Source: Lepidodermella squamata (lineage: Eukaryota > Animalia > Gastrotricha). From it: 64,000 nt of DNA. Positions within the stretch are counted from its first letter, which is position 1, and every line of letters starts with the position of its first letter. Below are positions 24,967 through 54,898 of this stretch, piece after piece. The stretch is from assembly GCA_047495785.1 (NCBI GenBank), contig JBLDXI010000066.1, positions 558,001-622,000 of the forward strand, written 5' to 3'. The notes under the pieces were generated by a model that had not been told where the DNA came from, did no database searches, and saw only the letters and a list, made by a program, of their open reading frames with translations. A program made the translations under genes and the position numbers.

Positions 24967-27462
24967 TTAAAGGTTGCCCTCATAAACTTCCTCGACCATC
25001 AAATAGGACGCCCCGCCAAGAGTGACTGCATACATTTTGTTGAAAACCCCCCAGCCTGCAACGTTCTTCCCATGAGCCAGTCCAATTGTTACAGGCCCAG
25101 CCGCAATCGGAACTCTGCAGATACCTTCGACTAAAGAAACATTTCATCGTAATTGAGGATTTTGAGTATATTTTACTTACTGGCCCGAGGTATCGCTCGG
25201 CAGAGTCCGTAAGCCATATTATCGAAGTGCCACCAGCCTTCAATTGTCGTTGGATCAGTGCAGTCGGCCCCGTTTATTGTAACGTAGAACCTTGTACTTT
25301 CTTGGCCAGCGAGTCCAGTTGTACAAAGCTCCTGCATTCCGTACCACTTGATATGAAGGATCGACTTGTCTTGAAGTTTGTTGTACGTTCGAGTCTGTAG
25401 TATAAGAAAAGATTAACCGAGTATTTTCGAGGGCTGCGCGGTAAGCCATACCGTAATAGAGTTCAAACAGGCTGATCCTGCAACAGCCCGGCATCCTTCC
25501 GTTATTGGGAAATACCGTCTGTTGTAGTAAGGCAGTTGGACAACATTGCCATCGTTCATCAATACTTTATTCAGAATTCAAATAAGAAAGAATCGTCATC
25601 GGAAATGAACTTACAAACGTTGATCGGCAAGTTTTCGTTGATTTCTTCGACAATCATTCCTGCAGGTTTCGAACGTCCAATGTCTATTCCATCGGCTTGT
25701 CCGCCATCAGGGTAGTAGGCACAATTGTGGTCCCACCATACAACTATATCGTATTTTCCAGCAGGCAGTCCACGGCACACCCCATCGACTATTAGGATTT
25801 ACAAAATATTTAACGTGGGTATTTTCAGCCCGAATTTATCTGATCAAAGGGTTTTTTGAGGTCTTTCTTGGCGGTTCAATTGTTCGGCGTATACTCTGTT
25901 AGGAAAAAGTGTGACATACGTTCAATGGTGATGCCGTAAGGCCCAACTCGATTTTGGTTCATATTGATAGAATTCTCCCGGATAGATGCCTCAATCGAGT
26001 AAGGGCTAGTGCACAATTGATCGTTGATCGTCACAAATAAGCGCGTGCATCGATTGGCGCTGTTATAGGAAATAGTTCCCTGCCAGTAAACTCGCAGCAA
26101 TGAAGTGTCAGATCGCTTTTTGTACTTCCAGATCGCCCAGTCTGTTCTGCCGCTTGGGTTCAGCCCATTGTATGACAGCTTACTGTTCCATTGGTCTGTC
26201 ACTGTGTTGAAAACCTGTGGGAAGCTAAAATTATCGGGAAAACCAGATCTTAGGCTATTTTTACCGTTGCACTCTGACACCTAGCTGTATCGTCTGAAAT
26301 TATGGAAAGGCATTTTGAATATTTTAAAATAAATGCAAATAAATGCAAACCTAGCTTGAATAAGTACTTCGCGGGAACGAACTCCTCGACCCAAATCATA
26401 TTGGGAGGCAACTTTCCATTGAGATTGCCACCTATGTCAGCCCCAGCACCTTGCGGTATCCCCCAATTGCGATAGTCGTAATATCCCTTCACATCGTATA
26501 TACCCGCAGGAATTTCATTTAGCGTGCAAGGGAATTCGGCGTGGTGAGAATGCCCATGGTAATCATTAGCACAGCCGTCCATAAATTCGTTCTGTATGGC
26601 CCAGAAAATATTTTCATCGCCAGCGCAATTGATCCCATTAACAGTCGCAAACACATAGCCGTCTCTATAAATGATACTTGAACCGGCGTTGAAGTGAATC
26701 CAATAAGCGATGAATATGTGCACTCGGATGTGCGTGAAATCATGCTTCTTTGTAATCGAAGTTGTCTGGATAAGGGAAAAGCGGATAGATTATTCAAGAT
26801 TTTGATGCATGCCCTTACCCATAGTGGATAAGGCGAGGATAGTGAACTGCGAATACTGTAGACTTGCAAATTCTGGTTGACTGTAACCCGGCGCGGGAAG
26901 TCAAAACACGACGACATCTCACCTAAATACAAAATAAGATGAAAGGAAATAATAGAAACATCAAATGAGAACCTGCACAGTAAGGTGGCGTATTCGGGCA
27001 ATCTTGAACACAAACTGGCGAAATCGCAGTGGCTGAGGGAGTTGTAATAGCAGGGCAGAAAGTGTCACAGCCATCAATTCCAGCTACGCGATCCGAAACA
27101 CCTTCGCCAATGCTTTGGGGAGCAATCAGAATTCCAGATGTCAGACTTCCCTCGGAGCGATCGAACCCGATTGCTGTGTCTTTATCCGCTCGCAACAGCC
27201 AGCACTCCTGCCGATAAGGAACGTAGAAGGCAGATCGGCAGGGAGGGTTGTAACTAGCAAGGCATTTGGTTTGGCATTGTTCCTGGCTCGAAACAGTGCG
27301 GTTGAACGGCTGAATCACGTACAGGTTGAACGCAAGATCGCTGAGGTCAACATTCAAAGCTATTTCTTGTGGCTGGAAGTAGCTAGAACATTTTCCCCGC
27401 ATCATCATTTCAGCATTCATCGGGCATAGCAGCCCTGCAAATATAAGTAGCAAAGGCACCAT
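24967..27462 (-). CDS. Secreted PAN/apple + three CTHRC1-C-terminal-like domains, family B copy 1 (multi-exon)
   Basis: Signal peptide MVPLLLIFAG; PAN pattern SQEQCQTKCLASYNPPCRSAFY...QECWL; three repeats of Kx3-4[ST]xLx[VI]xW...TING/DxxCxxPxxIE...[ED]GxCxxxxAG...[IM][VW]EE; ends EEVYEGNL. Confidence 0.8.
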
Positions 27463-28351
27463 CTTTCCAGTCATTTGAACTTGGATCAAAATGACGGCTT
27501 CTTAACTGCAGCTTACATTTTCCAGTGACGATCAACAATTTATGATGTGAGAGCCATGGTGATATCCAAATAAACTAGCAAAAACAGTAATCCTCCACGC
27601 GCCCTTTGTTATTCAGGAATATTAGGGTGTATCGTGCGCGGCCGGGAAAAAAGTCAACACGATATAAGAGAATTTAAGTGCATTCGTATGTTTCCTTAAA
27701 AAAAAACATGCGATATTGCCTTACGTGAGGGGTTTTAATAATTTAATGAAAATATAAATATTGTTATTTATTAATGTCGCTGAGAAACCGGGTAAACCTA
27801 ATTTTTTTGACAGCTTCAACCAGCATTATTAACTCTTCTGAAACCTATTAGATTATGTTGGATTACCCTATAAATTGACAGGCTTCTGTTTTTTATGGCG
27901 TCAACTTTAAATTCCCAATTAATTTGGAATATTTGTTTTCTCATTTAATTTCGCCAACTCATCGGCAAACTCCTCGGATATATACCAATGCGAGTCTTTA
28001 GCCAGCAGGTTTCTAGTCCTTGATGGAGCCTGATTTTTTGCGAGGCAAATCTCAAAATCCGAAAGCCAATTCGAAGGAGTCTGTAGTAAATTACCAACTG
28101 GAAAATAAGATTTTCGCCCTAAAACATGATCGCGCCAACTATGCTTTGGGTTTTAAGATCGATAGATCGATCGAAGCTCCCCATGTGGATCATGCTAATA
28201 TGTGGCAGACATCAATTCTGCCTTTCTCATCTTTGCTTTTTGCTAGCGACATCAGATAATGAACTCAATTGAAAAAGGTTTGCGGCAATTCATAACATCA
28301 TAAAATTACGCATAATAATTATTGATAAATTTTATTGCTCATTCCAATGAA

Positions 28352-29533
28352 CTATTTTCTAGCGCAGCAGACAATGCCAGGAAACAAGTGCACACTGAAA
28401 TCAATGACCCAAAATAGTCCATTTGCCGCAGCTAAAAATGCTATAACACGAAAACCAACAGCATACGATGAGAAGATGAATATTCCGAATATCATCGTAA
28501 CAGCAAAACCAATGGTTTCAAATAAGTATAGGGCAAAAGTTAGTTTCACAGAAAATAAGCTGTTATAGCGGCCTTTGGCCGGTAGAATGGCACAAATGGC
28601 TGAAATGTGCCAAATGAAAAAAGGTACAAAAAGCAGCAGGACGTTATAGACATAGCTTTTAGGTTGCCAACCACCAGGTTTCAAGTAGAATTCATAAAAA
28701 CACAGGGAAGTAGCCAAGATAATCACAGTGATAGAAAACAGTAAGTTCAGAACTTTCGTAACAGCGGCTGAGAATGGCTTACGGAGGCAAGACACGTTGT
28801 AGACACTATTGTCTAAGGTATGTTCCTGCGATGCTGGGAAAACATCCATAGGACCAACTCTTCGATAATTAATGATTTGGGAGACATGGCATAAAAAGCA
28901 TAAACCCCCGAGTACTGCAGCATGTAGGAAGGCAAAATCTACGGAGACAGGAGGTTGGTAAAAATGGAATCTCCGATTTTTAGGCCACGGATGCTCTGTA
29001 AGAGTCAAATTAACGCAAATCATGATGAGGCAAACTGTAGAGATCGCAAGTAACAACGAATTCAATACATAAATTGAAAAAATCACGAAATATTCAGCCA
29101 TATTATTATAAGAATCTTTCGTTGCCAGGCTAAACACTACGATTAAATGGAAAATTCCGGCAATTATTGGGAAGAGAACTGGTAAGATTGGCCGATCGCA
29201 GTCCTCAAGGCATGCTGTGAAATTTCGACTTTTTTGAAGAAAGGCGAACGGATTCTTGCCGATCGAAAGCGATAGCGATGAAGTTTTATCCCCGGCTGAA
29301 TGCCAATCCCGGCAGTCGTTAATGCAAGTCGATGCGCCGTAGAATTCGAAAGCGGCAAAGTAGAGCCAGAATAAATAGGCAAGGCTCAGTATGCAGTTTG
29401 TGACTTTAAATGCGACTGCTACTTGTCTGCTTCGATACATTGCCGGGCCATTGTAATCCGTTTTATTCGATAAATCGTATGCCATCAGTTCCTGATGCTC
29501 GGGGTAAGTTCTCGACGAACCGTAAGATGCCAT
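28352..29533 (-). CDS. 8-TM membrane protein family A, paralog 5 (393 aa)
   Basis: PAMYRS...FKVTNCIL, CINDC...CLEDC, WVIDFSVHLFP. Confidence 0.88.
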   Translation of the reverse strand: MASYGSSRTYPEHQELMAYDLSNKTDYNGPAMYRSRQVAVAFKVTNCILSLAYLFWLYFAAFEFYGASTCINDCRDWHSAGDKTSSLSLSIGKNPFAFLQKSRNFTACLEDCDRPILPVLFPIIAGIFHLIVVFSLATKDSYNNMAEYFVIFSIYVLNSLLLAISTVCLIMICVNLTLTEHPWPKNRRFHFYQPPVSVDFAFLHAAVLGGLCFLCHVSQIINYRRVGPMDVFPASQEHTLDNSVYNVSCLRKPFSAAVTKVLNLLFSITVIILATSLCFYEFYLKPGGWQPKSYVYNVLLLFVPFFIWHISAICAILPAKGRYNSLFSVKLTFALYLFETIGFAVTMIFGIFIFSSYAVGFRVIAFLAAANGLFWVIDFSVHLFPGIVCCARK

Positions 29534-30415
29534 ATGTTAAATTTTCCAAATTTTGCTGAAGGAAAATATATCTAAGATAATTTTTCAAAAGATCAGTTCC
29601 TTTTTAGTTAAAGCTCTTAAAAAATTCCAACAATTCATTGATAGTAAAATTGAAGACCTTACGAAATCTTGTTCTTTTTTACCATCTATCGTGTCGCATA
29701 TTTCATCTTTGAATTGAATATGCAAATTTTGGTAAATATACATGGTTTTGTCACATAAAAATATATTTTAGCGCATTGCCAAAAAATAATTGAATAATTA
29801 ATTTCATTAGATTAAATTGTTGCAAAATGCAGTCATTAATAAGCGATATTTCCTGGAATTCGCCGTCAAGAATTTGGCTAGCTGGCAATAAACGAGGCAT
29901 CATATCAATTTATTGTGAAAAGCCACAAATTAAAGACTGAATAATAAGTGACTCATTGGCTATGCAAACAAGGATATTTGCTTGGCAGTGCCAAATGGGC
30001 CATTACTATGTGCAATATTTGATGACAGACTTTAGCGCGTAAAATTGATGAAACAATTATGCTGTTTAGAAAAAAACGAGGGGGAAATTGCGCTTCTGTA
30101 AGTGGGCGAATAAAACCGGCTCAATCGCTACCGCGTGTATGCTTGATCATGACTCAATCTGTGGCTCTTGAAGACGTTACCCCTTTATTGCGTGCCGTTT
30201 ATATTGCGTTGCCGCAGCAACAGTTTTATTACGCTGTCTACGTTTCGATAACACGTGGCAAAACAATCGATAAAAAAGCTGTTAAAATGTGAGCATGCAA
30301 TTTTTCGATCCTGACTTGAAGAGGATGGGTTGGGTCATCACAAACGATAAATGATTAATCAAAACAATAATAGATTTGTCATAGCAACCATTGCTGAAGC
30401 TGAGAAGCTTCTTGA

Positions 30416-32581
30416 TTAAATAACAATCTCGTGTGCTGCCCCTCGTCCGAAAAGCAGCATAGCACTCGTTCCGCCTCCTCCAGACTCCGCATGATGGTAA
30501 GGAGCCTCACCAACAGTTCTACGACCTGAAACTGCATAACTCCTCGCCCGGCCCCTTCGCTGCGGAGTTGGCGAGAAGAATCCTACAACATTCTGCCAAA
30601 ATCCTGACTGTTCAGCCCGATTAGCGGCCAAAGACCTAATTCTTCCAGAAAATTGTCGGTTCTCATCGCCGTGGTTGTAGGAGATTCTGAAATTTCTCAA
30701 CGCACTAGCCACTGAGTAATTCGGCATTTCAAACTGCCGAGGCATTGAAAATGAAACGTTATTCCTAGGCCGGTGGTAGCTTGGCCGAGGGGATGGGGCC
30801 AGTGATGAAAGAGCGCTCGCAACCTCGCTTAGAAGACCTTGCCGATGCGAGACAGTTTCTTCGCCGTGATCTGCCGGGTGCACTGAAGCGTGACGCTCTT
30901 TATAGCACCGTTCAGCATACTCGTCAATCAGCCGTTCGATTTCAGCAGGCGATTGGGCGGTTTTCGACCGCCACTGGAAGGCGGTGAGAAGGTTTTTGAT
31001 GTGGTACCGGCCGAGTTCGTTCGCGAGTTTGGGATCAGAAGTTGGGTCGAGTGGGGGTGAATGTTGAGCAACTCGAGTTTCGCCACTGACCCAATGTGGC
31101 ATAGCTAGTTCAAACTGAGATACAGCGTTTCTCGAAAGTTGAGATGGTGTTTCGTTAACTGTTGCCTTTTGAAGGCCAAGTTCGCGCTGACAATTTGACG
31201 AAATTCAAATCGAGGTAGAATTAAAGAATGGAAACTTACTGCTTCGCCTGGCATCCATAGTGAGAGGCGCCTTCTGAAGAAATCGAGCCGTTTAGGGTTG
31301 TAGGCTTTGTCATTATATGACATCCAATAGTGATAGCGCATCGAGGCTGTTGGGGAGTCGCTCTGAAAAAGTAGACAAAAGATGAAAGATGAATGCTGAA
31401 TAGTGGTTCTCTCAAGTAAAAAATAATTAAAAATCCAGCTTAATTTAGTGAAGAAGAGAAAAATTACCCCAGCAGCCATAAGAGGTGATTGGCGGAACGT
31501 GTAGACATAGTCTTTGAGCAATCCTTTGCCTTCACCAGGCGAGGTGAACCACAACGCACGATTCGAGAACAGAATGTTGCGAATGCGCCGCTTCTCCGCA
31601 AAATTCAAATGTACATAAAGCGATATTGATAGCATGATGAAGGTCAGCATGATGATAACTGCACCCGTTATTGGTATCGCCATGCTGTTGGACACCATTT
31701 TGATGTAATAGCTCTGGAAAAAGGTGGCCAGTTTTGCTCGCTCGCACTGATCAGTTGGTAATGTGCAGTTGTTGTTGGTTTTAGCCAATATCGTGCCAAT
31801 TGATTCCAGGATGGCTTGCTCGCCTACAAACAACAATATTTGTACAAAAAATCAGAGAATAAACAAAAAACGGGAAAATTTTCCCCAGTACAAGAAAATA
31901 GAGATATTATAGTGAAGAAAAATAGAGATTGGGTATTTAATTTTTCCTGATCATAAAATTGGTTTCAATCATAGTAAAAACGATAATACGTCAGAATTTG
32001 TTCAATTTTTAAAAAATATTTTTTTGAAAAAATTGAAACCAAGTTAATGTTGAAAAGGAGAAAGAATAAAGATATTGTTGATAAATCGAAAAAATCACTT
32101 CGAAAATCATGATTTAAGACTTTGTTAAAATCTTACCTGAATGATCATGATTCATTTGATCGGCGGTTTTGTCCTTGTGCTCTGCAAAAGTAGCGCTTAG
32201 AATCGATAGAAGTCCTCCCACTGGCTTTGTCGTAGGCCTTAGCGTCGCTCTAGTTTGGGTCGAGGCCGAGCTAGCCTGCGTTGACGGCGTTGCCAGGGTT
32301 CGAAATCGCATTTTATTCGGCGGCGGCCCGGGTGTGATGAACATGAAATTTTCAACAGGCGAATTAGCCGGCATTTTGCTGGTCGTGATCGGCCGGCGTG
32401 TTGCTGGCGATCTCGCATACAGTATCACAAGGTTGTTGGTACCTGTTGAAACCGCAAAAGAGCGAGGCATTATTGTTGACACGCGCGGTTAGGAATTGGC
32501 ATAACAATAAGGTAAAAAATAATAATAGCCACAGTATAACGCCTTACCATTAGCCAATAATTGCGCGGTGTCAGACATCAT
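30416..32581 (-). CDS. Putative multi-exon single-pass membrane protein with S/T/P-rich N-terminal part; function unknown
   Basis: ORFs 32114-32482, 31105-31836 and 30416-31102 contain GTAAG donors and TTTCAG/TAG acceptors; one TM segment AIPITGAVIIMLTFIMLSISLYV; not all exon borders resolved. Confidence 0.5.
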
Positions 32582-33786
32582 GAATTCGCTCTGCGATGAT
32601 GATGAGTGAATTATCGTAGCATAGGCGCAGGTCTGGCGAAAAATACGGCGCCGATTAAATGCTGCTGCCGATGTTACAACTGCGCACTTGATTTATTGCG
32701 CGCACGCTTTTTTGCCTTGCTTTTATCGCACGCGCGCGCTTGCGTTTATTGCGAAAACACAGCCGTGCGCGGGTTAACAAGGCGCAGCAAGTGCGTGAAT
32801 GCGCTATTTACCTATGCGCGATTGTTTACAGGCGGGCTTTTATCGTCTAATCATTGCCTGGTAAAGTACCCGGTGAAATTGCTAGTTGTAACCGTGCATG
32901 AATGATTGTGATATATTCCCATTCACAAATAAACAAAACAACGATACTATCTCAGCGATGCTCGAATACCAGCTAGTTTTTTCACTCTTTGAACTATGGA
33001 TGTATCTGTTGAGTGTGGGATAGATAGCGATAAGATGCCGAAGTGCCTTAGGTTACAAAATACTCGGAAAAATGCACTACCGGTATCGAAATCAGAAGTC
33101 ACGAATTTTGAGCTCTAAAAAGTTACGTTGGTAAAAGAGCACAAGTAAAAATGAGCGAGTTATAAACGAGATTTTGATCTCATCCTAACTGCCATGAGAT
33201 TGTAATCGACGATTTAAATCTCAGAAGGATTTCGCTGCAGCTAGTATGACGTATCGCCGGTCGTTTTCAACACTTAATGTTCGCATATCTCCAATTTTCA
33301 AAGAAGATATAGTTTATAGATATAGCCGAATGCCAATGTTCAAGGTGACAAACGTCTTACGCATACCAGCGAGGTTGAAACAAGCCGACTTTCTGACCCA
33401 GCATGGGCATAGTCATCAGCATTATACGTTGGGAAAATCTTCTTTCGTATTTCAATTTCACTATTTTATCATTATTGCTCACAAATTGTTGAGATTGTTT
33501 ATTCTTCATATTTATTCTTTATATTCTAGGCCACAAGCGAAAACGGTTTTATTTGAAAAAGAGTCGGTCGCTTATTTTAGGTAAATAAAAACAGTCCAAG
33601 AAAGTTGAAGTTGAAGGCTAAGTTGGCAGCTGCCTATCTTTTAACCCAGAAATTAAGTATTTTATTAAGTCTGATATTATAATTATTGAACTATTAAAAT
33701 GCCAAAGGCGCTTCTAAATCGCCAAACAAAGTTACTCTTAGTTCGAGTCATCAAGCGTTAGCTGAATCATGTCTCAGCTTCAGAAA

Positions 33787-36372
33787 TTATATGTTCCCTT
33801 CATAAACCTCCTCAACCATCAAATAGGAAGCTCCACCAAGAGTTGCTGCGTACATTTTGTTAAAGTTCCCCCAGCTTGCCAGATTTTTCCCGAAGGACAG
33901 TGTAAGTGTGACGGATCCCGCCGCGATGGGAACCCTGCAGACTCCCTCGACTAAAAAAGAATAAAAATCCAAATTATCATTTACATTGAGTAAACTTATG
34001 CTTTACTAACCGACTCTTGGGATCGCCCTGCAGAGTCCATTTTGTGGGGTGTCATAGTGCCACCAAGATTCTATAGGCGTCGGATTGGTGCAATCGGCCC
34101 CATTTATCGTAACGTAAAACCGAACACTTTCAGCGCTTATATAACCATTGCTGCAAAATTCCTGCATTCCGTACCATTTTATATGAAGGACGGACTTGTC
34201 CTGTAGTTTGTTATAAGTTCGAGTCTAAACCAAGGGAAAAAAATACTAAAATTTTCAAGTATTTTTTACGAACAATACTGCAATTGTGCTCATACAGGCT
34301 GAACCGGCTGCAGCCCGGCATCCCTCTGTTATCGAGAAATACCGCCTGTTGTAGTACGGCAGTTGGACAACAGTGCCATCGTTCGTCAATACTGCACAAA
34401 TGATTCAGATAGAAGAAACGAACATAGCTGCGAGAATGGAACTTACAAACGTTGATCGGCAAATTTTCGTTGATTTCTTCGACAATCATTCCTGAAGGCT
34501 TTGAACGTCCAATATCCATTTGATCGCCAGAACCAACATCAGTGTAGAAGGCACAATTGTGGTCCCACCATACAGCTATATCGTATTTTCCAGCCGGCAG
34601 ACCACGGCAAACTCCATCAACTATCAAAATTGAGAAAATCCTCATAAATGTGACTTCACTGTGACAAGGACAACGCTTGAAGCTCATCTTTCACGCAACA
34701 CGCAACATTAAAAGCAATTCACGAATTTTGATTATGCTGTTTTATGCAAAGGCGAAAATAATCGCCAGTTGTTAAACTGACTTAAATGTGACTGAATCTT
34801 AAATGTGTCAGTTATTTCAAGTTATGCATGTAACATACGTTCAATTGTAATGGCGTACGGTCCAACGCGATTTACACCGCCAGCGTAGGTGAACTCACGG
34901 ATAACTGCCTCGATGGAGTAAGGATTGGTACATAATTGATCGTTAATCGTGACATATAACCGTGTGCAACGGTTGTAACTGTTGACGAAAACAGTGCCCT
35001 GCCAGTAAACTCGCAGCAATGACGAGTCCGATCGTTTCTTGTACTTCCAGATCGCCCAATCCGTTCTTCCGCCCGCAAGATTCCCATTGTATGTCAACTT
35101 GTTCCATTGCTCTGTCACTGTATTGAACACCTGGAAAGGCAATTTGGGAATCATTAGAAAGCAGCTCATTCTTACTGTTGCGCTTTGACACCTTGCAGTA
35201 TCGTCTACACAAATTGTAAAGTACATGGCACCTTATTTAACAGAAGTAAGTTTTATACCAAGCTTGAAAAGGTATTTTGCTGGGACAAATTCCTCGACCC
35301 AAATCATATTCGGGGCCAACCTTCCTCCTAAATTGCCACCGAAGTCAACTCCGGCACCTTGGCCCCACCCCCAGTTGCGATAATCGTAAAACGTTTTCAC
35401 GTCGTAGGTCCCGGAGGGAATTTCGTTCAGCGTGCAAGGAAATTCACCGTGGTGCGAAAAACCATGCCCATCGTTTGAACATCCGTCCGTAAACTCGTTT
35501 TGTAGAGCCCAGAAAATATTTTCATCGCCAGCGCAGTTGATTCCATTCACGGTGGCGAACACGTAGCCGTCTCTATTTGTTAATGGGCCGGCGTTAAAAT
35601 GAATCCAATAAGCGGTGAAAATGTGGATGCGAATGTGAGTGAAATCGTGCTTTTTCGTAAAAGACGTTGTCTAGCAAGGTTAAAGACGGAATTGTAACGT
35701 TTTTCTATTTTCTATTCTATTCACCCAAAGTGGAAACGGTGAGGAAAGTGAAGTGCGTCTTTGGTAAAGTTCCCCATTCTGATTTATTGTCACCCGGCGT
35801 GGGAAGTCGAAACACGAAGACATTTCTCCTTCAAAAAAGGAAAAGGCTGGAACTGATGAACGGATGTAAACTATTAAGCAACCTGCACAGTATGGCGGCG
35901 TATTCGGGCAATCCTGAACACAAACTGGCGAAATCGCAGTAGCCAAAGGGGCTGCAACAGCTGGGCAGAAGGTGTCACAGCTATCGATTCCAGCCACGCG
36001 ATCAGAGACACCTTCGCCAATGCTTTGGGGAGCGATCAGAATGCCAGATGTAAGACTGCCTTCGAGGCGATCGAACCCCACTGCCGTGTCTTTGTCTGCT
36101 CGCAACAGCCAGCACTCCTGCCGATAGGGTACGTAGAAAGCAGATCGACATGGAGGGTTGTAACTCGCAAGGCATTTGCTTTGACATTGTTCCTGGCTCG
36201 AAACAGTGCGGTTGAACGGCTGAATGACGTACAGGTTGAAAGCCAGATCGGAGAGGTCCACATTCAGAGCTATTTCCTGTGGTTGAAAGTAGCTTGAACA
36301 TTTTCCTCTCATTATCATCTCAGCATTCATCGGGCATAGCAGCCCGGCTAACAGAAGTAGCAATGGCACCAT
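33787..36372 (-). CDS. Family B (PAN + 3x CTHRC1-C-like) copy 2
   Basis: Same exon series as copy 1; MVPLLLLLAG start, EEVYEGNI end. Confidence 0.8.
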
Positions 36373-37249: not shown

Positions 37250-37780
37250 AGATCGGGAAATTTTCGTTGATCTCTTTGACTATCATTCCAAATATTTAGT
37301 TATGGCTCAATTTCACGGAGTTGGAAATTACCTATAGGCTATAGGATCGCACCATATTACAACATCCGCCAGCAACTGAACTCGAAAGTAGACATCAACT
37401 ATCCATAAACGAAACTGTATAGAAACCGACATTTAACGTCACGCCGGGGGGATCGACATGACGGTTTCAGTTGATGCTGTATTCGCACTCGCGTAAATGT
37501 TGCCTTAATCGAGTAATCTTAATTGGTACACTATCGATTGATAACGGTCGCATAGAAACATATCCAATCGGAACATGTTAGTGTCAAAGCGTTTTTTTGT
37601 GCAAAACAGGTTTAAAAAACATCAAGTGCGAGTTCGAGCGATCGAGTGATTTCGAGGTAGCCGACCCATTCTGTTTACCGCATGCAAGCCCCCGGCAAAT
37701 CTAGCTCGGAAAAAATGGACAGAAATCGTCTGGAAGAAAAGGCGGATCCTACAGGTGCTGTTTCGTCTGAAAAGAGGAAA
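37250..37780 (-). pseudogene. Degenerate family B fragment
   Basis: GMIVKEINENFPI at about 37250-37290 and decayed remnants of neighbouring exons, no continuous frame. Confidence 0.5.
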
Positions 37781-37956
37781 AATAAATCTTCCGGCACTGA
37801 CCCGAATCAGTAAACTAATTCTGTAGACTAATGTTTTGTCTTCCAGACTTTTTATGATTAATTATGCTTCACTCGGTTTATTAATCAAGATATATAGTTC
37901 AGACATCACTGTTGGTAAGCTAATTGGGGTGCGGTCTTTTGGCTGTGTTAGCAACT

Positions 37957-40442
37957 TCAAATATTTCCGTCGTAAACTTCCTCAACCATGAGATAAGAAG
38001 CGCCTCCGAGAGTTGCTGAGTAGGTTTTGTTAAAGGTGCCCCAATTCGGATCCACCTTCCCAATGCTCAGCCCAATCGTAACAGTGCCAGCTGGAATCGT
38101 CATCCTGCAAATTCCTTCGACTAAAGCAAAACGCCGTCAGATTGTAACCTAGCTTTATTCAAGTAGGACTTACCAACTCTCGGGATAGCACGGCACAGCC
38201 CGTATGCTAGGTTGTTGAAATGCCACCACGATTCAATCCGTGTCGGATTAGTACAGTCCCCGCCGTTGATGGTGATGAAAAATCGAGGACACTCAGCCGT
38301 ATCAGCGCCTAGCGTGCAGAATTCTTGCATCCCGTACCATTTTACATGCAGTGCAGATTGACCTTGTAGTTTCGTATAAGTCCGAGTCTACAAATTTAGT
38401 GAACTGGTAATTTGCCTTAATCATTAAAATTGTATCGAACCGTTACAGGGCTCAGGCAAGCTGAACCTCCAGTAGTTCGACAGCCTTCTGTGATCGAAAA
38501 GTACCTTCGGTTGTAGTAGGGTAGTTGCATTACGCTTCCATCGCTAAGAAGTACTAAAGCAGCAAATGAGTGATGAAACTATCGAACCTATTACCGAACT
38601 CACGAGCATTGATAGGCTGATTTTCGCGAATCTCTTCAACCATCAACCCAGACGGTTTCCCACGACCAATACTGATTCCGCCATCCGACGGGTTGTTTGC
38701 GTCAACATAATAAGAACAAGACCGGTCCCACCATATCGCAATATCGTACCTCCCAGCTGGCAATCCACGACAAACGCCATCAACTAGGAAATAAAATAAG
38801 AATCGGATTTGAAGATGAATTGATATCTCACGTTCTATTGTTGTTCCGTAAGGTGCTGCCCTTCTGGTCGCAGTACTCCCAGTAATCTCGCGCATTGCTG
38901 CTTCGATTGAGTAGGGATTCGAGCACAACTGCCCATTTATGGTTGCAAAAAATCGGATGCACGAGTTGTAGACGTTCAACATAACAGTCGCCTGCCAATA
39001 GATTCGCAACAGAGACGTGTCTGACCTCTTTTTATACTCGAAAATAGCCTTAATAACAGTTTCGAAGTATTAGCTGGAAGAATTAATTCTCGAGGATTAC
39101 CCAATCAGTTTGGCCACCTGGAATCATGCCGTTGTACGTCAAATTTCGCCATTGTTTTGAAAAAGTGTTGAAAACCTAAAGAAAATTCTGAATATTTTTG
39201 AAATGAAATGAAAATCCTTACCGTTGCGCTCTGACATCGAGCAGTGTCATCTTAAAATTTCAAAAATGTCAGTAATTTTTTCAATCTCAACTATACAAAC
39301 CGAGCTTGAAAAGGTATTTTGAAGGTATGTACTCTTCAATCCAGATGAAATGTGGAGCTTTGAAGCCATTGAGATTCCCGCCGATATCCGCCCCATTACC
39401 ATGCGTTAGGCCCCAGAAACGGAAGTCGTAAAGCATGTTAATTGAATACGTCCCAGCGGCGTATTCTTGTTGGGTGCACGGAAATTCAATGTGTAAAGAA
39501 TGACTTGACCAATCGCTATTGTGCGAATCGTAAAATTCGTTCTGCAACACCCACATAATGTTATCATCGCCGGTACAAGTGTTCCCATTTATCGTAGCGT
39601 AGATGTAAGCGTCTCGGTATGGACAACAGGCAACGCCGGGCCCATTTGCATTGAAATGCATCCAATTAGCGATAGATAGATGGATTCTGATGTGCGTGAA
39701 ATCGTGCTTCTTCGTAAAACTCGTGGTCTTGAGAATAAAAACCCTTGATTCCTATAATCGAAACGAGGCAAAAGTGCTCACCCATAGCTGGAATGGCATA
39801 GCGCTTCCGCTGCGAGGTTGATACAAGTCAACATTCTGGTTGATAGTCACTCTTCGGGCGAAATCGAAACATGTGGACATTTCTCCTGTCAGTTGTCCCA
39901 CAATTTTTAGATTTAATGATTAAATTGAATGACAAACCTGCGCAGATTGGTTGACTATTCGGGCAGTCTTTGAGGCAAACTGGCGTGATGGCCTCCGCAT
40001 CTGACGGTTGCGCATTTGCTGGACAATAATTCAAGCAGTTATCAACGTTATTTATCCGGTCGATTACTCCATTGCCGATAGACTGCGGGACCACTAGAAC
40101 ACCAGAGGTCCCGGGTCGCCCATCGAGACCAGCTCGATCGAACTCCAACGCAGTAGCCTTGTCCGCTCTCGATAGCCAACACGTATTCCGAGACAAATCG
40201 ACAAAAGCTGATCGGCACGGCGGTGATCTTGTGCCTAAACACCTCATTTGGCAGTGTTCGACGCTTTTCACCGGCACGTTGCTAGGTTGAATGACGTACA
40301 AATTCCAGGCTAGATCGGCTGTGTCGATAGTGACCGATATTTCCTGAGCTTGCATGAAACTGTTACATTTCCCCTTCATTATAAACTCAGCGTTAAGCTG
40401 AGCGTATAGAAATGTGATCGAAAAAAGGAGAAGGGCGAGCAT
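37957..40442 (-). CDS. Family B copy 3 (most divergent)
   Basis: MLALLLFS start; PAN SVEHCQMRCLGTRSPPCRSAF...TCWL; three CTHRC1-like repeats; EEVYDGNI end. Confidence 0.8.
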
Positions 40443-40741
40443 CTTCCAGTTTACCCAAAAATTGTTCTTGTTGCTGGGGTACAGCCTGGGTTTGGAAAGC
40501 CTGGGGTTGGAGTGATTCATAATTAAACGCTCGCTCACACCACTGGAGTGCTGAATGAATCAAAACAAATAGCGGATGATCTGCTGTAGTGAGAAAAACA
40601 TGTATATTACAGCATTGACGTCAGAATCCGACGTGTCCCGAATAACATGTCCAGGCTTTTAAACCTATGAACTGTTTAATAGTTTTAGTCTTTCCAGCCA
40701 TAAATCCATTCATTTCTTGTTTCAGTCATACTGGTTGAACT

Positions 40742-40790
40742 CTAAATATTGCCCTAATAAACTTCCTCGACTAACAAAATAGGACGGCGC
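40742..40790 (-). pseudogene. Isolated remnant of the family B last exon
   Basis: Reverse strand TCCTATTTTGTTAGTCGAGGAAGTTTATTAGGGCAATATTTAG matches the VEEVYEGNI exon end, with a frameshift and a GAG to TAG stop. Confidence 0.6.
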
Positions 40791-41300
40791 TGTATGGCCC
40801 TCCCGCTATTGTCTCAAGTGAACGTCAAAGATGCCTACGCAATCATTAAGGCCGAGGCGCCCCCTGTTGCCGAGTTGCGTTTCGCGCTTCGGGCCGATTG
40901 GCCAATATTGGACAGATTTGGCCCAAGAGGGACTTGGGTATATGCAGTTTTTGATATATCCGCCCATCAACTCTCTGAGTTGGAAGAAAAAAAGCCAGCG
41001 GTAAGCCGCCTTGGCCTTGAAGACGGCGTGGAGCTAGATGCGATTGTTGACGATGATGGCGAAGGCGATCACAAAGGTCAAAGTCATAGCTCTGATGGAG
41101 TGACATGAATTGAGACATGCATTTAATTAATAGTCTCAAATAGTCAGCCGCCTTAATTGAGTGGATACTTCAACATATTTCAAAATATTCAAATGGCGAT
41201 TTGAAATTATTAGCAATGAAAGTCAATTGTTTTACTCTTATTTCGAGTCGTCAAGCGTTAAATCCATCACATTTCAAGTTTCAGATATTCTGCCCCATCT

Positions 41301-44130
41301 TTATATATTGCCCTCATAAACTTCCTCAACCATCAGATAGGACGCTCCGCCAACAGTTGCTGCGTACGTTTTGACGAAATTTCCCCACGTAGCGTGATTT
41401 TTCCCAAAGGCCAAAGTGAGCGTGACAGGTCCCGCCGCAATAGGAACCCTGCATATTCCCTCGACTATCAAAGAATAAATTCAAGTTATCTAATTAATGA
41501 TTAATTTAATCATTTACTAACCGACTCTTGGGATCGCGCGGCACAGTCCATACGGCGGAGTATCGTAATGCCACCATGATTCTATAGGCGTCGGATTGGT
41601 GCAGTCAGCCCCATTTATCGTAACGTAAAACCGAACACTTTCAGCGCTTATGTATCCATCCGAACAAAATTCCTGCATCCCGTACCACTTGATATGAAGG
41701 ACGGACTTGCCCTGAAGCTTGTTGTAAGTTCGAGTCTAAACCAAGGAAGAAAATATAATTCTTTTGTACATAGTATTCTTTTCGAAAAAATACCGCGATC
41801 GTGCTCAAACAGGCTGATCCTGCAACAGCTCGGCATCCCTCCGTTATCGAGAAATACCGTCTGTTGTAGTACGGCAGTTGGACAACAGTGCCATCGTTCG
41901 TCAATACTGAATTAGGGATTAAAATATGAATAGAGGATAATTGATAATTGAAAATATATATATATATATATAAATATATATATATATTAAACTTACAAAC
42001 GTTGATCGGCAAATTTTCGTTGATTTCTTCGACGATCATTCCTGCAGGTTTTGAACGGCCAATGTCAATTCCATCGGCAACACCAGCATCAATGTAGCTT
42101 GCACAATTGTGGTCCCACCACACAACAATGTCGTATTTTCCCGCCGGCAAATTACGGCAAACTCCATCAACTATGAAAATTGATGAATATGTCACATTAA
42201 AAGTTGACAATCGTGGAATGTCGACAATATGAAACATAAAACATAAATTGCCATTTAATGTGTATGAACAGTCATCCTTGTGAATTGTAATGATGACCAA
42301 AAAATCCATGAATAAATAAATGAAATCCACGCCAGGGAATCTGAATCTGAAAATATGCATAGGTAAAATTCGCAGCGATTACGCTAATTTCGAAAAACTC
42401 GATTATCGAAAATCGATATTGATTGATTATCGATATATGGATGATCACTTTCCCATACACATTTCAATGAGTTTCAACCAAAAAGTCTTATAGACATACT
42501 TATACTTGAACTTCTCAATTATTCGAAATTGATCAACTTCATTAACTGCGAACAATCCACAAGGTTAAGTTTAACATACGTTCAATTGTGATGCCGTATG
42601 GTCCAACGCGATTTACACCGGGACCGGGGGCGTACTCACGGATAGAAGTCTCGATCGAGTAAGGATTGGCGCATAGTTGATCGTTAATCGTAACATATAA
42701 ACGCAAGCAACGATTGTAAACGTTCATGTTAACAGTGCCCTGCCAGTAAACTCGCAGCAAGGAAGTGTCCGATCGTTTCTTGTACTTCCAGATCGCCCAG
42801 TCTGTTCTACCGCCCGCAGTATTACCATTGTATGTCAATTTGTTCCATTGCTCGGTTACAGTGTTGAAAACCTGGAAAGCACGAATGAATCAACCGTGAT
42901 ATCACCATAAAAATGAGATCCTTACTGTTGCACTTTGACACCTCGCTGTATCATCTGAAATGTTATGAATTGATACCACATTGATTAACACCTTTATAAA
43001 AGAATTTCACCTAGTTTGAATAAGTATTTTGCTGGGACAAATTCCTCGACCCAAATCATATTTGGAGCCATTCTTCCATTTAGATTGCCACTGAAGTCAA
43101 CCCCGCCGCCCTGAACCATCCCCCAGTTGCGATAGTCATAATAGGCCTTCACGTCATATGCCCCAGCAGGAAGTTCATTCAGAGTGCATGGAAATTCGCC
43201 GTGGAATGAATAACCGTGGTATTCGCTTGCGCAGCCATCCAAAAATTCGTTTTGAATGGCCCAGAAAATATTTTCATCACCTGCGCAATTGATTCCATTC
43301 ACGGTCGTAAACACATAGCCGTCTCTAACAGTGTTGGCTGAATTCAAGTTGATATGAATCCAATAAGCAATGAAAATGTGGACTCGAATGTGGGTGAAAT
43401 CATGCTTCTTTGTAAAAGAAGTTGTCTGGAAAAGAAGAAGCACAAAGCCTATTACTAGATGCTTTAAAATTTCCAAAAATACCCATAATTGATATGGTGA
43501 AGAGAATGTTCCACGTATACTGAAAACTTGCCCATTCTGATTGATTGTCACTCGACGCGGATAGTCAAAACACGACGACATCTCTCCTTAAAACGGAACC
43601 GGTTTAGAAGCATTGAAGACATAAAAAATTGTACAAATACCTGCACAATAAGGTGACGTATTTGGGCAATCTTGAACACAAACAGGCGAAATCGCAGTGG
43701 CCGAGGGGGTCGTGACAGCTGGGCAGAAAGTGTCACAGCTATCGATTCCAGCCACGCGATCAGAGACACCTTCGCCAATGCTTTGCGGAGCGATCAGAAT
43801 GCCAGAGGTGAGACTGCCCTCGAGGCGATCGAACCCCATTGCTGTGTCTTTATCTGCTCGCAACAGCCAGCACTCCTGGCGATAGGGAACGTAGAAGGCA
43901 GATCGGCAGGGAGGGTTGTAAGTCGCTAGGCATTTGCTCTGACATTGTTCCTGGCTCGAAACCGTGCGGTTGAACGGCTGAATAACGTACAGGTTGAAAG
44001 CAAGATCGGATAGGTCCACATTCAGAGCTATTTCCTGTGGTTGAAAGTAGCTCGAGCATTTTCCTCGCATTATCATTTCAGCATTCATCGGGACCACCAG
44101 CCCTGCAAATATAAGTAGCAGAGGCGCCAT
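41301..44130 (-). CDS. Family B copy 4
   Basis: MAPLLLIFAG start, same exon series, EEVYEGNI end. Confidence 0.8.
41954..41987. repeat. (AT)n microsatellite in an intron
   Basis: ATATATAT... run with one interruption. Confidence 0.9.
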
Positions 44131-45710
44131 GTTTCTTGTACTTCTAGGATCAAAACTACAGCGTCTAACATAATGTTACTTCATTCTCCTATAGTTATCA
44201 ACAATTTATGAAAGCAACTAGAGTCATGGTGTTTGTTAAACAATCGAGCCAATATGAATATCAACTCACCCATTGTTCTTCGTGAATTACAGCTCGCATC
44301 AAACCAAGCAATAAGTCAACGATTAGCGAGGGTTCAAACATGCTCCAGTCGTTCGTTCTCTATTCTAAATATAGAATTGTCCTCCAAAATATAGGCCGAG
44401 TAGCTGCGCGAATTCGATATTTTACGACATAAAATGTATTGCATTGCCTCACGTGTTCAGGCCTGATATTTGAATGAATATCCTTATGTATTATTCAAAT
44501 CGCCAGCGTCGTGGACAAACTAGGTATTATGCTTTTTTCATGGCAGGCTTTGCCTGCATTGAATCCTGTTGTTAATTTCTGAACGGCTGTTTTTTTCCTC
44601 ATGAAATCATGCCTTTTTCTCCAAATACTTGCTGCCGAACTGATAAAAAGACAATTTAACGGGTGATTGATTCGCCTCTATCGCGTCACGCCGGTCAACA
44701 CTCTCATCACTTGTCTCTGATGATACTGAGCTGTCGGAATGGGTGAGTACCATTAAGTAAATTCAGGTACTTTTATGAGATTTTGACTTTCCACCAGTTC
44801 AGCAGGCCATGCGATAGAACCTAACGTAGCTATTATATCATCCGTCCTTTTAGATGAGAAATTGGCTGTTAAAGAAATCCAATGAGCAATGAGCAACGCG
44901 TGCTGTCAGTCGAGAAGCGAATATCATGCTAGGCATTTGTTCTCATGGGGCCCTTATTATCGATTACACCGACGACCCAGGCCATAGTATGATAAAATGA
45001 TCAATGTTTACGAAATCGATAAAGCTTCGATTCAAAATGACGCGCCCCAGTTATTTTCGACGACGTATCCCGGAGAAAACATGGTGCAAATGGTTGCTTT
45101 GGTTTACATCGTGCTAAGTTCGCTGTTCCGATGATCACTATTGAAACCTGTTGCCTCGATTTTTGTGAGGCCTATCTTCAAATATCGTGTCGGTTTTAAT
45201 ACTATAAAGTAATTCAGACAATTCTTCATCGATTGAATACGGGGTTCTCGGGCGAATAAATTGATGGAAACAAGCTTTACGCGCTCCTAATGCTTCGAGA
45301 AACGACCCTCTGGCCAACAGTCAGCTAACAGTAAAACGTCAGCTAATGAATGACAGCAATGGCAGACTGGCGACTTCGACCCACAAATCTGTATCCTCTG
45401 ATAGCTGATAGTATAGATATCGCTAGCGACATAGCAAACATGCCCAATAATGTATTCTTGAATGAATTTACTCTTTTCAAGTGATAGAAGGCATGCGGCA
45501 CTCGTTTAATGAAGCATGAGGGAACATTGAATAGTCAGCCGCTTGTATTAGGTCAAAATTTAAAAAATGTCAATAGTTTCAAGGCCATTCGAAGCTTAAA
45601 GCAGGGTCGAGAGCTGCGCTTATTCCACGTCAGATGCTTTTACCCATAATCATTGCGTCATCTCACAATAAATCGGTCATTGTTTTAGTTTCGATTATTT
45701 TTGTCAAACT

Positions 45711-47975
45711 TTAAAGGTTGCCCTCGTAAACTTCCTCGACCATCAGATAGGCCGCTCCGCCAAGAGTTGCTGCGTACGTTTTGGTGAAAACTCCCCAGCT
45801 AGCGTGATTTTTCCCGAAGGCCAAAGTGAGCGTAACAGGCCCCGCCGAAATTGGAACCCTGCATACCCCCTCGACTACCGAAAAATAAATTGAAATAAAA
45901 TCATGATTATTTTGGCAAAGTCACGATTGACTAACCGACTCTGGGAACGGCTCTGCAGAGACCGTAGGCTACACCGTCGTAATGCCACCAGGATTCTATG
46001 GGCAATGGATCAGTGCAATCAGCCCCATTGATGGTAACGTAAAACCGAACACTTTCCTGGCCAAGATTACCATTTGAACAAAACTCTTGCATCCCGTACC
46101 ATTTGATATGAAGGACGGATTTGCTCTGAAGCTTGTTATAGGTTCGAGTCTGAAAAAGGGAAAAATATAATATCCAAAATCCGTTGCGAACAAAATACCG
46201 CGATCGTGCTCAAACAGGCTGCCCCAGCCACAGCTCGGCATCCCTCTGTTATCGAGAAATACCGCCTGTTGTAATATGGCAGTTGGACAACTGTGCCATC
46301 GTTCGTCAATACTGGTCGAGTGATTGAAAGAGAATAAATAATATTGCCGCGGGAATTCTTCAACTTACAAACATTGATCGGCAGGTTTTCGTTGATTTCT
46401 TCGACGATCATTCCTGCAGGTTTCGAACGTCCAATATCCATTTGATCGCCCCCACCACCATCACTATAGTAGGCACAATTGTGGTCCCACCATACAGCTA
46501 TATCGTACTTTCCAGCCGGCAAGTTACGGCAAACTCCATCAACTATTAAGATTGACAAAAATATTGCCAAGTTAGCAAGGCTGTTCTTTTCTGCTCAATT
46601 TAGATAGTTAATTTCGAAATTCTTGGACTTCCGGCATTGGAAAAATCCGGGAGCTGATGTGTTTTCTACTTGTCAATAGGACCCGGCCGAAAAAAACAAA
46701 GGGTTTCCACCCTGTGGTTTTTTCAGCCTTCCTCTGATTGGAGTCCTGGAGCTGGGGTGTTGTGACACCCCAGCAACCCTGTACTTCGCACCCTGTTTGA
46801 CATACGTTCGATCGTAATGGCGTAGGGCCCAACACGCATTTGATTTGCATTGACAGCAATCTCACGGACAACTGTCTCGATCGAGTAAGGATTGGCGCAT
46901 AGTTGATCGTTGATAGTAACATATAAACGCGAGCATCGGCTCCAACTGTTGACGAAAACAGTGCCCTGCCAGTAAACTCGCAGCAAGGAAGTGTCCGATC
47001 GTTTCTTGTACTTCCAGATCGCCCAGTCTGTTCTACCGCCCGCAGTATTACCATTGTATGCCAATTTGTTCCATTGATCTGTTACAGTGTTAAAGACCTG
47101 GAAAAGGCACTTGAATCATCACCAAAATAATAAGTTTTCTATCCTTACTGTAGCGCTTTGACACCTTGCTGTATCATCTGTAATGGTATGAATATTTATA
47201 TACCACATTGATAAACACCCTGATAAAATGATTTCACCTAGCTTGAATAAGTATTTTGCTGGGACAAATTCTTCGACCCAAATCAAATTCGGTGCCATTC
47301 TTCCATTAAGATTGCCACTGAAGTCAACCCCGCCGCCCTGAATCATACCCCAGTTGCGATAGTCATAAAAGGCCTTCACGTCATATGTCCCAGCAGGAAG
47401 TTCATTCAGCGTGCACGGAAATTCGGCGTGGTGCGAATGCCCATAGTAATCATTATAGCAGCCGTCCGTAAATTCGTTTGTCAGTGGCCAGAACATATTT
47501 TCATCACCTGCGCAATTGATTCCATTGACGGTCGTGAACACATAGCCGTCTCTAGCGGCGAGGCCTGAACCCGAGTTAATGTGAATCCAATAAGCGATGA
47601 AAATATGCACTCGAATGTGAGTGAAATCATGCTTCTTTGTAAAAGAAGTTGTCTGGAAATGAAAAGACCAGTAGAGCTTTTAGATGCTTTGTGATATCGA
47701 AACCATACCCATAGTGCATAAGGAGAGGAGAATGCACCTCGTATACTAAAGACTTGCCCATTCTGATTGATTGTCACTCGACGCGGATAGTCAAAACACG
47801 ACGACATCTCTCCTTCAAACAAAATTATTTGGGGACAATTCTAGGGAGAAACAAGTAATAATAACCTGCACAATAAGGTGACGTATTCGGGCAATCTTGA
47901 ACACAAACAGGCGAAATGGCTGTGGCCGAAGGCGTTGTAACAGCTGGGCAGAAAGTGTCGCAGCTATCAATTCCA
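45711..47975 (-). pseudogene. Family B copy 5, first coding exon interrupted by the Polinton
   Basis: Downstream exons present; match to paralogs stops abruptly after CAGCTATCAATTCCA (47975), where paralogs continue GCCACGCGATC; signal peptide and PAN domain missing from the window. Confidence 0.8.
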
Positions 47976-48270
47976 AGCAGATAGGAATTGCCGGAGCTGG
48001 GCCACTCGACGGCTTACACCCTTTTTGGCAATTCGAGCCTGACCATGGAAATTGGCAAAACATTTCAAGGACAATTTGAATAAATATTTAGTGTGTTTGA
48101 AATTGCTGGGATGGTAAGTTATGACAATTCCGCGCCCGCGAATGAGGACAAAATTTCGGCGTAAGGGGGGAGTATTAGATGCGCAAAACATACATGAGCG
48201 AGTTATGACTCATCGCACACAACACTTCCTTAAAATAACACTTTAAAATGAGACGGACACACATATAAAT

Positions 48271-48447: not shown

Positions 48448-48542
48448 AGGTTAAATTTTTTATTTAAATGTCTACAGCACATGATTCATAGGGGAAATAC
48501 CGCCGAGTGAAATGACACGATTTTAACGCCTTGGTATTATAC

Positions 48543-54890: not shown

Positions 54891-54898
54891 ATTACTCA

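Follow-up and report, generated by a model that had tools for sequence, protein, structure and literature searches.

CTHRC1 has been regarded as a signalling protein of collagen-like type, in which trimerisation of the head depends on the stalk. The C-terminal domain has been modelled as a C1q-like sandwich able to form trimers, and the only survey of these proteins, which did not include gastrotrichs, reported collagen-less C-domains solely from choanoflagellates, Symbiodinium and bacteria, and loss of the CTHRC1 gene from most neighbouring protostome groups (PMC7058181). Several C1q-type heads can be carried by one chain: the mussel protein HcC1qDC6, which infection induces, has three tandem gC1q domains and binds bacteria, LPS and PGN (PMC5519582), and vertebrate CTRP4 has two C1q domains (PMC9952994). 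The TNF-like lectins PLTL (PMC12914763) and BC2L-C, through its N-terminal domain (PMC3164656), are sugar-binding trimers, and an apple-domain lectin with a known binding role has been described (PMC3219417).

We analysed a window of 64,000 nucleotides from the gastrotrich Lepidodermella squamata. Its minus strand carries, at 24967-47975, five genes (c1 to c5) with a common exon plan (Table 1). The first four are intact, encode 663-675 amino acids in 9-10 exons, and have GT-AG introns throughout and uninterrupted frames; c1 and c2 are 6.3 kb apart, with other ORFs in between. c3 diverges most, sharing about 62% identity with the other copies. An intron at the position of its additional intron is common to copies c6, c8, c9, c10 and u1 and is absent from the clade formed by c1, c2, c4, c5 and c7. 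The first-pass annotation had proposed five tandem genes, each with a signal peptide and a PAN domain. Five genes are indeed present, but the array continues, with at least 13 loci on the contig, and both features are found in c1-c4 but not in c5, which lacks them inside 24967-47975 because an insertion splits its exon 1.

Table 1. Positions in the window of the genes, exons, domains, loops and inserted element.
Feature	Position	Strand	Remarks
c1	24967..27462	-	intact, 665 aa, 9 exons; GT-AG introns, open frame
c1 exons	27462-26973, 26922-26819, 26765-26351, 26293-26265, 26214-25920, 25788-25615, 25564-25452, 25394-25181, 25130-24967	-	
c2	33787..36372	-	intact, 663 aa, 9 exons; PF25815 matches on exons 5 and 8
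c2 exons	36372-35883, 35828-35725, 35670-35259, 35204-35176, 35130-34839, 34620-34447, 34391-34279, 34224-34011, 33950-33787	-	
c3	37957..40442	-	intact, 675 aa, 10 exons
c3 additional intron	39049..39100	-	52 nt, GT-AG, interrupts the exon-5 equivalent; predicted
c4	41301..44130	-	intact, 664 aa, 9 exons; transcribed
c4 exons	44130-43641, 43586-43483, 43425-43011, 42954-42926, 42871-42580, 42170-41997, 41906-41794, 41735-41522, 41464-41301	-	
c4 exon 1, PAN/apple	43642..44130	-	signal peptide 44130-44077, then PAN/apple and Cys-rich linker; PAN_1 match on c1 and c3 equivalents
c4 D1	43012..43586	-	divergent CTHRC1_C-like jelly roll (predicted), exons 2-3
c4 D2	41998..42954	-	CTHRC1_C, exons 4-6; PF25815 match on exon 5
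c4 D3	41304..41906	-	CTHRC1_C, exons 7-9; PF25815 match on exon 8
c4 D1 C-D loop	43321..43353	-	first quoted loop; ranks second by pN among the clade A windows (pN 0.55, pS 0.58)
c4 D2 E-F loop	42599..42640	-	second quoted loop; highest pN window (pN 0.64, pS 0.68)
c4 D2 G-H loop	42043..42111	-	third quoted loop; third-highest pN window (pN 0.43, pS 0.34)
c5	45711..47975	-	exons 2-9 and last 110 nt of exon 1 (47975-47866); frames open, gene interrupted
Polinton/Maverick-like insertion	47976..64000	.	17,466 bp, extends 1,441 bp beyond the window end
ORF, 1413 aa	50249-54490		inside the insertion
ORF with rve integrase and chromo domains	54899-56452		inside the insertion (Pfam)

The insertion breaks c5 exon 1 at 47975/47976. 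The gene's first 129 codons, which share 96% identity with c4, are found beyond the window, at a distance of 17.5 kb (G000:C66:623442-623827). The element is flanked by a 6-bp target duplication (ATTCCA, + strand), and its terminal inverted repeats match at 56 of 60 positions. Pfam identified neither a protein-primed polymerase gene nor a capsid gene in it.

This broken gene, together with the locus u2 (L004), from which the middle exons are absent, and with loci on contigs C64 and C4, some of which may represent the two haplotypes of a single region, would suit a gene-prediction artefact or a decaying pseudogene array. Such an explanation is very improbable and is already contradicted by open frames, purifying selection and spliced transcripts. 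The 11 modelled copies have frames open over 662-675 amino acids, 8-9 introns and conserved exon phases, with an omega of 0.14-0.18, and c4 is spliced in cDNA: four of its eight introns are seen spliced as modelled in public cDNA contigs. The exact c4 junctions 41464/41522, 41735/41794, 42170/42580 and 43586/43641 are found in cDNA-like contigs of run X1, and a template-switch oligo adjoins 5'UTR sequence.

The architecture claimed at first reading, a signal peptide, a PAN domain and three CTHRC1_C-like repeats (D1, D2 and D3) with no Gly-X-Y collagen, is borne out by the gene models. PAN_1 (PF00024) is matched in c1 (E 3e-6, 27.3 bits) and c3 (E 4e-6, 26.9 bits), above the Pfam gathering cut-off of 21.4 bits. 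CTHRC1_C (PF25815) is matched by D2 with 33.6-33.7 bits (cut-off 27), at E 5e-8 in c1 and at E 5.5e-8 in c3, over model positions 38-124. A six-frame search, exon by exon, places the exons of D2 and D3 above the PF25815 cut-off in each of the five copies; in c4, D3 ends four residues ahead of the stop codon. The expected profile match to CTHRC1 was thus obtained for D2 and D3 but not for D1, which alone gave no Pfam match (c1 and c3 equivalents). By direct profile comparison (hhalign), the repeats match one another: D1 with D2 at E 1e-6 (E 5e-5 in a second comparison) and D2 with D3 at E 8e-11 (probability 97%). In addition, in a language-model atlas the features of D1 come close to those of CTHRC1_C clusters (score 0.93). 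D1 is tied to CTHRC1_C, as a putative divergent member, by its profile comparison, by these features and by its predicted fold. We considered whether repeats 2 and 3 could be halves of one domain, and this was rejected, as alignment of the downstream exons shows a true third domain on exons 7-9. Every intact copy has three domains, never fewer or more, and these are mutually divergent, with about 28% identity between positions and 45-90% within a position across paralogues. No G-X-Y run exceeds four triplets (the longest is of 2-4 triplets in the 11 proteins), and among the c1 and c3 exon translations that were scanned, covering the PAN exon and pieces of D1 and D2, none gave a collagen Pfam match or, at E <= 1, a match to the C1q family.

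These proteins are like CTHRC1 in being secreted, in carrying the PF25815 domain, modelled as a C1q-like jelly roll, and in their tandem, clade-specific expansion, which is common for CTHRC1 genes in invertebrates (PMC7058181). They differ from it in that CTHRC1 has a G-X-Y stalk and one domain per chain, whereas here there is no stalk, there are three domains, the first too divergent for the Pfam model, and a PAN domain is added at the N-terminus. The closest analogues are the triple-C1q proteins of mussels: bivalve C1qDC proteins also form an expanded family in which a signal peptide is followed by tandem, collagen-less jelly-roll heads of the C1q/TNF superfamily, although they belong to another sequence family and have no PAN domain.

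In the AF2 models of D1 and D2, whose mean pLDDT is 58 and 62, the core strands lie at pLDDT 70-84; the models place only 7-8 of the ten strands of an antiparallel jelly-roll sandwich, leave the N-terminal strands unplaced and each contain an intron-encoded insert. The best structural match of the D1 model (c4) is the TNF-like lectin PLTL (9ib6; PMC12914763), with a Z of 9.7, above the quoted background of the structure-search tool, and an rmsd of 3.0 over 121 residues. For the D2 model (c3 equivalent), Pgp3 comes first, with a Z of 7.2 that falls within the background range, and PLTL second (Z 7.1). The match list of the two domains comprises PLTL (Z 9.7), Pgp3 (9.2), LIGHT (7.8), a C1q head (7.3), 5hzf (7.3) and BclA (7.2), and its top entries are trimeric TNF/C1q-type domains. 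Structural matches to CTHRC1 clusters of the atlas have a TM of 0.53-0.55, and a Bc2l-C_N cluster is among the D1 feature matches; Foldseek against the PDB returned nothing at E <= 0.001. These moderate-confidence models indicate that D1 and D2 match TNF/C1q-like jelly rolls. PLTL and BC2L-C are, however, bacterial homotrimers with about 10% sequence identity to the gastrotrich domains, and the likeness described here is one of fold.

We take as the most likely working form a single chain in which the three domains would stand side by side about a pseudo-threefold axis, as the A, B and C chains of the C1q head do, so that covalent linkage of the heads would take over the job of the CTHRC1 collagen stalk. 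The domains might instead each form trimers with their counterparts in other chains, or stay monomeric, and build multivalent networks such as a matrix, cuticle or adhesive component. The solved TNF/C1q-type matches are mostly homotrimers of separate chains, which favours this view, and the source organism, a gastrotrich, has a scaled cuticle and adhesive tubes. Moreover, each domain of the mussel triple-C1q protein bound ligands when expressed alone (PMC5519582). Against it, all intact copies have exactly three domains, each position distinct, the linkers, 7-9 residues long, belong to the best-conserved segments (pN/pS 0.05), and engineered single-chain trimers fold, as in 5hzf (a C1q head) and 4zch (a TNF-family trimer), which have three jelly-roll modules per chain and are both among the D1 matches. 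These are man-made fusions forming a trimeric head, while here the fusion would be natural and its packing hypothetical. We consider the network arrangement unlikely and retain the single-chain pseudo-trimer.

With the c4 PAN exon as query, the family comprises about 29 loci genome-wide, and all 43 PF25815 exon matches in the genome sit downstream of one of the 29 PAN exons. None of 17 loci has a stop-free frame spanning two or three domains. D1 was run in a full HMMER search against 1.84 billion representatives and returned five matches, all judged unrelated and none with PAN or CTHRC1_C; the best is the translation of a simple tandem repeat, and PEGA-repeat proteins rank second and third. 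With D2, a word-index search yielded no relatives under a length filter that would exclude relatives of 660 amino acids, and sequence searches of the PDB with D1 and D2 returned nothing. The family is best explained as lineage-specific and expanded, with a triplication that predates the family expansion.

The first-pass annotation had set a near-invariant PAN exon against short hypervariable loops, and the spliced translations contain, letter for letter, the ten-residue loop strings that it quoted. Among c1, c2 and c4 the PAN exon is, as described, highly conserved (93% protein identity); its dN of 0.03-0.04, against a dS of 0.41-0.52, indicates that this near-invariance is due to purifying selection and not to recent copying, and only 7 of its 149 codons fall in the neutral class. 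Codons were analysed using independent sister pairs and a likelihood summed over ancestors. In clade A, 79% of codons have an omega of 0.04 and 21% an omega of 1. Neutral-class sites make up 55 of 145 sites in apex-class loops, as against 7 of 62 in base-class loops (p 1e-4) and 23 of 173 in strands (p 5e-7), the loop positions being deduced from strand order, not from model coordinates, and the D3 loop boundaries from alignment alone. Pooled pN/pS is 0.41 in apex loops, 0.07 in base loops and 0.13 in strands. Instead of being scattered, the variable sites thus gather, by jelly-roll topology, in the C-D, E-F and G-H loops of every repeat, at the same end of the domain and away from the linkers. 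In clade C, these loops barely differ; the D1 C-D loop has a Cys-Cys pair in the clades other than clade A.

Positive selection could maintain diversity in such loops as a binding face, which would make the family a repertoire of immune type or for gamete recognition. Its large size and its clustered, tandem arrangement favour this, as does the fact that the quoted loops take the first three places by pN, with pN/pS of 0.94, 0.95 and 1.26, although these windows were chosen after inspection of the data and are near saturation because dS is 0.4-1.5. The ratio expected to exceed 1 in the loops is therefore about 1, pN being about equal to pS, and over all apex loops it is well below this value. 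The site models gave a divided answer: M2a is preferred to M1a in clade A (LRT 7.98, p 0.018), a result resting on one site, but the test is non-significant with all 11 copies (p 0.06). The omega > 1 class holds about 1% of sites: one site in the D2 G-H loop has a posterior of 0.94-0.98, being the sole site to reach 0.98 in the clade A model, and one in the D3 C-D loop has 0.87. Furthermore, the domain trees conflict, c5 grouping with c4 in D1 (90% support) and with c7 in D3 (99%), and the copies thus recombine. Recombination inflates site tests for positive selection, and the evidence for it is further weakened. Positive selection has weak, marginal evidence and is not established; loss of constraint explains the loop differences as well as selection for diversity does, and we regard a repertoire maintained by selection as rather doubtful.

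Taken as a whole, the data are best explained by a family of secreted, soluble, collagen-less proteins in which a PAN/apple domain at the N-terminal end precedes three CTHRC1_C domains, no two of them identical, and which would form a single-chain pseudo-trimer with a variable binding end and a constant PAN, a reading that we hold to be moderately probable. The base would consist of the linkers, which are short and conserved, together with the likewise conserved B-C, D-E and F-G turns. The far end would be a ligand-binding surface that varies by paralogue, built from the C-D, E-F and G-H loops of each of the three domains, while the constant PAN could provide a second, common binding or anchoring function. 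By analogy with known proteins, the role is probably extracellular recognition of carbohydrate or protein ligands, as a lectin, a pattern-recognition protein or a matrix/adhesive component. We infer the pseudo-trimer, the ligand-binding role and any link with immunity.

The family would extend the known range of CTHRC1-domain proteins to a phylum absent from the only survey (PMC7058181). In this animal lineage, the stalk has been dropped, the head triplicated on one chain and a PAN domain added, and the outcome has expanded to some 29 genes. Should the three heads assemble into a pseudo-trimer, the family would be nature's equivalent of the single-chain C1q and TNF ligands made by engineering. 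A bolder and speculative proposal is that of a natural, single-chain, heterotrimer-like C1q/TNF head in which gene fusion would have taken the place of the collagen stalk and whose nine far-end loops would form one recognition surface per protein, diversified over the ~29 paralogues, as a germline-encoded recognition repertoire of Gastrotricha, which to our knowledge is a phylum with almost no molecular immunology. As a scaffold, a pseudo-trimer would be compact, its base constant and its top open to change.

The five minus-strand genes (c1 to c5) share one exon plan with kept intron phases, as seen in DNA alignments of the five repeats and in boundary-guided gene models, and the loop strings quoted by the first-pass annotation are found verbatim in their translations. 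The proposed five-copy array stands as far as this common plan is concerned but not for the integrity of c5, which is broken and whose signal peptide/PAN part lies beyond the window end. Stop-free translations of 665, 663, 675 and 664 aa are obtained for c1, c2, c3 and c4, respectively, with GT-AG introns throughout. A 52-nt intron (39049-39100) gives c3 a tenth exon; as six paralogues outside the window also bear an intron at this position, it is an old one, lost by the clade formed by c1, c2, c4, c5 and the outside paralogue c7 (clade A). c4 is shown to be transcribed and spliced as modelled: in a public cDNA-like run of 2015, contigs over its exons skip four introns precisely at the modelled junctions, and in one of them a template-switch cDNA oligo adjoins c4 5'UTR sequence. 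Coverage of c3 in this run is thin and ambiguous, and the contigs carry no information on expression level.

The homology of c5 exon 1 breaks off at 47975/47976, and its missing 129 codons, encoding signal peptide and PAN, are found at 623442-623827 of the same contig, 1.4 kb beyond the window end, with 96% identity to c4. Six identical bases (TGGAAT in gene sense), i.e., a target duplication, stand beside both c5 halves, and the 17,466 bp between them carry terminal inverted repeats (see table), which fits a Polinton/Maverick-like insertion. This insertion looks recent, because all c5 frames are still open.

Features of the window and its surroundings (window coordinates unless stated)
Feature	Position	Strand	Content or evidence
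Polinton/Maverick-like element in c5 exon 1	47976-64000, on to equivalent of 65441		6-bp target duplication; terminal inverted repeats matching at 56/60 positions
Element ORF	54899-56452		rve integrase, chromo and PLA2-like domain matches
Element ORF	50249-54490		1413 aa
u2, family member	L004 (G000:C66:540001-546000) 3236-4759	minus	exons 1-2 and second half of D2 to end
ORF beside the array	23460-24584	plus	374 aa, intronless, multi-pass membrane
ORF, c1-c2 gap	28352-29533	minus	393 aa, multi-pass membrane protein in appearance
ORF, c1-c2 gap	30416-31102	minus
ORF, c1-c2 gap	31105-31836	minus
ORF directly upstream of a family member	L012 (G000:C15) 743-1744	plus	334 aa, trypsin-like serine protease in appearance

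Exon 1 encodes a hydrophobic N-terminus, assigned by inspection as a signal peptide, a PAN_1 domain over the Pfam cut-off and a Cys-rich linker. Downstream, the CTHRC1 resemblance noted in the first-pass annotation is confirmed, CTHRC1_C (PF25815) being over cut-off in every copy for the second and third domains, D2 (exons 4-6) and D3 (exons 7-9). The first domain, D1 (exons 2-3), is without any match in the Pfam scan and is tied to D2 by hhalign (E 1e-6 and 28% identity across 113 columns with 11 spliced paralogues; E 5e-5 with reference-only alignments), by ESM Atlas features in common with CTHRC1_C clusters (score 0.93, 182 features) and by the agreement of the predicted folds. D2 aligns with D3 at E 8e-11, and the D1-D3 alignment is weak taken alone. 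Outside this genome, an exhaustive HMMER search with D1 against 1.84 billion representatives gave no true relative; as the searched library evidently lacks the proteins of this species, this blank points to a lack of sampling among close relatives and is no sign of their absence in nature. The family proteins checked are indeed devoid of collagen, as had been claimed, their longest G-X-Y runs being of 2-4 triplets, and the chain ends four residues past the last D3 strand, thus leaving no membrane anchor.

Two stop-free genomic pieces were folded, c4 D1 (with intron 2 in frame) and most of c3 D2. Both models are beta sandwiches of moderate quality (mean pLDDT 58 for D1, with core strands at 70-83, and 62 for D2), with N-terminal strands unplaced and one intron-encoded insert in each. 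In an exhaustive structural comparison, the top match of D1 is the TNF-like lectin PLTL (Z 9.7, rmsd 3.0, 121 residues), followed by the Pgp3 C-domain (Z 9.2), LIGHT (7.8), the C1q head (7.3), the engineered single-chain C1q head 5hzf (7.3) and BclA (7.2); D2 matches the same families with Z of 5-7, and an ESM Atlas shape search leads to CTHRC1 clusters. The predicted folds agree with the published modelling of the CTHRC1 head as a trimer-capable, C1q-like sandwich (PMC7058181).

In the eukaryotic assembly from which the window comes (121 Mb, 151 contigs), the c4 PAN exon matches 29 loci, among them c5, which is in two pieces. Genome-wide, all 43 of the 43 CTHRC1_C exon matches sit 1-4 kb downstream of PAN-exon loci, the order PAN-D1-D2-D3 is found by tblastn at 17 of 17 fetched loci, and no stalked single-head CTHRC1 was seen. 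Near-identical pairwise scores were obtained between contigs C64 and C4 (589-626 kb with 1744-1752 kb; 361-454 kb with 1548-1578 kb). Haplotypes that were not collapsed, or segmental duplications of recent date, may account for these look-alike loci, and the true gene number may therefore be lower than the 29 counted. One pair of family members on C64 also recurs 31 kb apart. In the member u2, neither the main D1 exon nor the first half of D2 is present, which makes it a deleted copy or a pseudogene. Among the neighbouring ORFs (see table), the intronless one weakly resembles insect-type chemosensory receptors over the full length (7tm_7, E 5e-4, under cut-off) and may be a gustatory-receptor-like gene; the three in the c1-c2 gap have zero Pfam matches.

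The paralogues are old, with dS of 0.29-0.94 between sister pairs and saturation towards c3, and an overall omega of 0.14-0.18 indicates strong constraint on the genes. In clade A, a two-class codon model (omega 0.04 for 79% of codons, omega 1 for 21%) is far better than a one-class model. In this clade, the top three pN windows are exactly the three loops singled out by the first-pass annotation (D2 E-F, D1 C-D and D2 G-H, in this order), with pN of 0.64, 0.55 and 0.43 versus pS of 0.68, 0.58 and 0.34, and a gene-wide pN of 0.07. Loops were sorted into classes using the order of the strands in the two models and in the domain alignments; since jelly-roll strands each reverse direction, the C-D, E-F and G-H loops lie at one end of the domain, and the opposite end holds B-C, D-E, F-G and the two termini. 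Neutral-class sites make up 55 of 145 positions in the former set versus 7 of 62 in the latter (Fisher p 1e-4) and 23 of 173 in strands (p 5e-7 against the former), and pooled pN/pS is 0.41, 0.07 and 0.13, respectively, and 0.05 in inter-domain linkers. C-D, E-F and G-H vary in D1, D2 and D3 alike, i.e., nine loops per protein, and only 7 of the 149 PAN codons are neutral-class. As variable sites are thus concentrated at one domain end, the picture of a constant framework with one variable face is supported at the level of topology, the loop classes following strand order, not coordinates. The D1 C-D loop of c3, c6, c9, c10, u1 and the L012 gene holds two adjacent cysteines followed by Pro, a pair absent from clade A, where loop variability is highest (main D1 exon compared at 43012-43425 in c4 and 39302-39727 in c3); its loss there fits a release from constraint.

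That the loops were diversified by selection is not upheld. Adding a class with omega > 1 improves the fit only marginally, in clade A (LRT 7.98, p 0.018; 1% of sites, one site at posterior 0.98) and in all 11 copies (LRT 5.62, p 0.06). Moreover, domain trees are in strongly supported conflict, the partner of c5 being c4 in the D1 tree but c7 in the D3 tree, and dS varies threefold between domains within one gene pair; copies have thus exchanged segments, which inflates tests of positive selection. Within the clade of c9, c10 and u1, loops are nearly alike. The data are best read as a near-neutral rate of loop change, and they do not demonstrate diversifying selection.

We slightly favour, as the most economical model, an intramolecular pseudo-trimer, in which the three domains of one chain would pack together, because (i) most of the TNF/C1q-type domains dominating the structural matches were solved as trimers, (ii) each intact paralogue has exactly three domains, (iii) each domain position has been distinct since before the family expanded, (iv) short linkers join the domains and show the strongest conservation, and (v) man-made single-chain C1q and TNF-family trimers do fold. 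By analogy with C1q heads, bivalve C1qDC proteins (PMC5519582), TNF-like lectins (PMC12914763, PMC3164656) and an apple-domain lectin (PMC3219417), the variable end of the domains could be a ligand-binding surface, and PAN could provide a constant second site.
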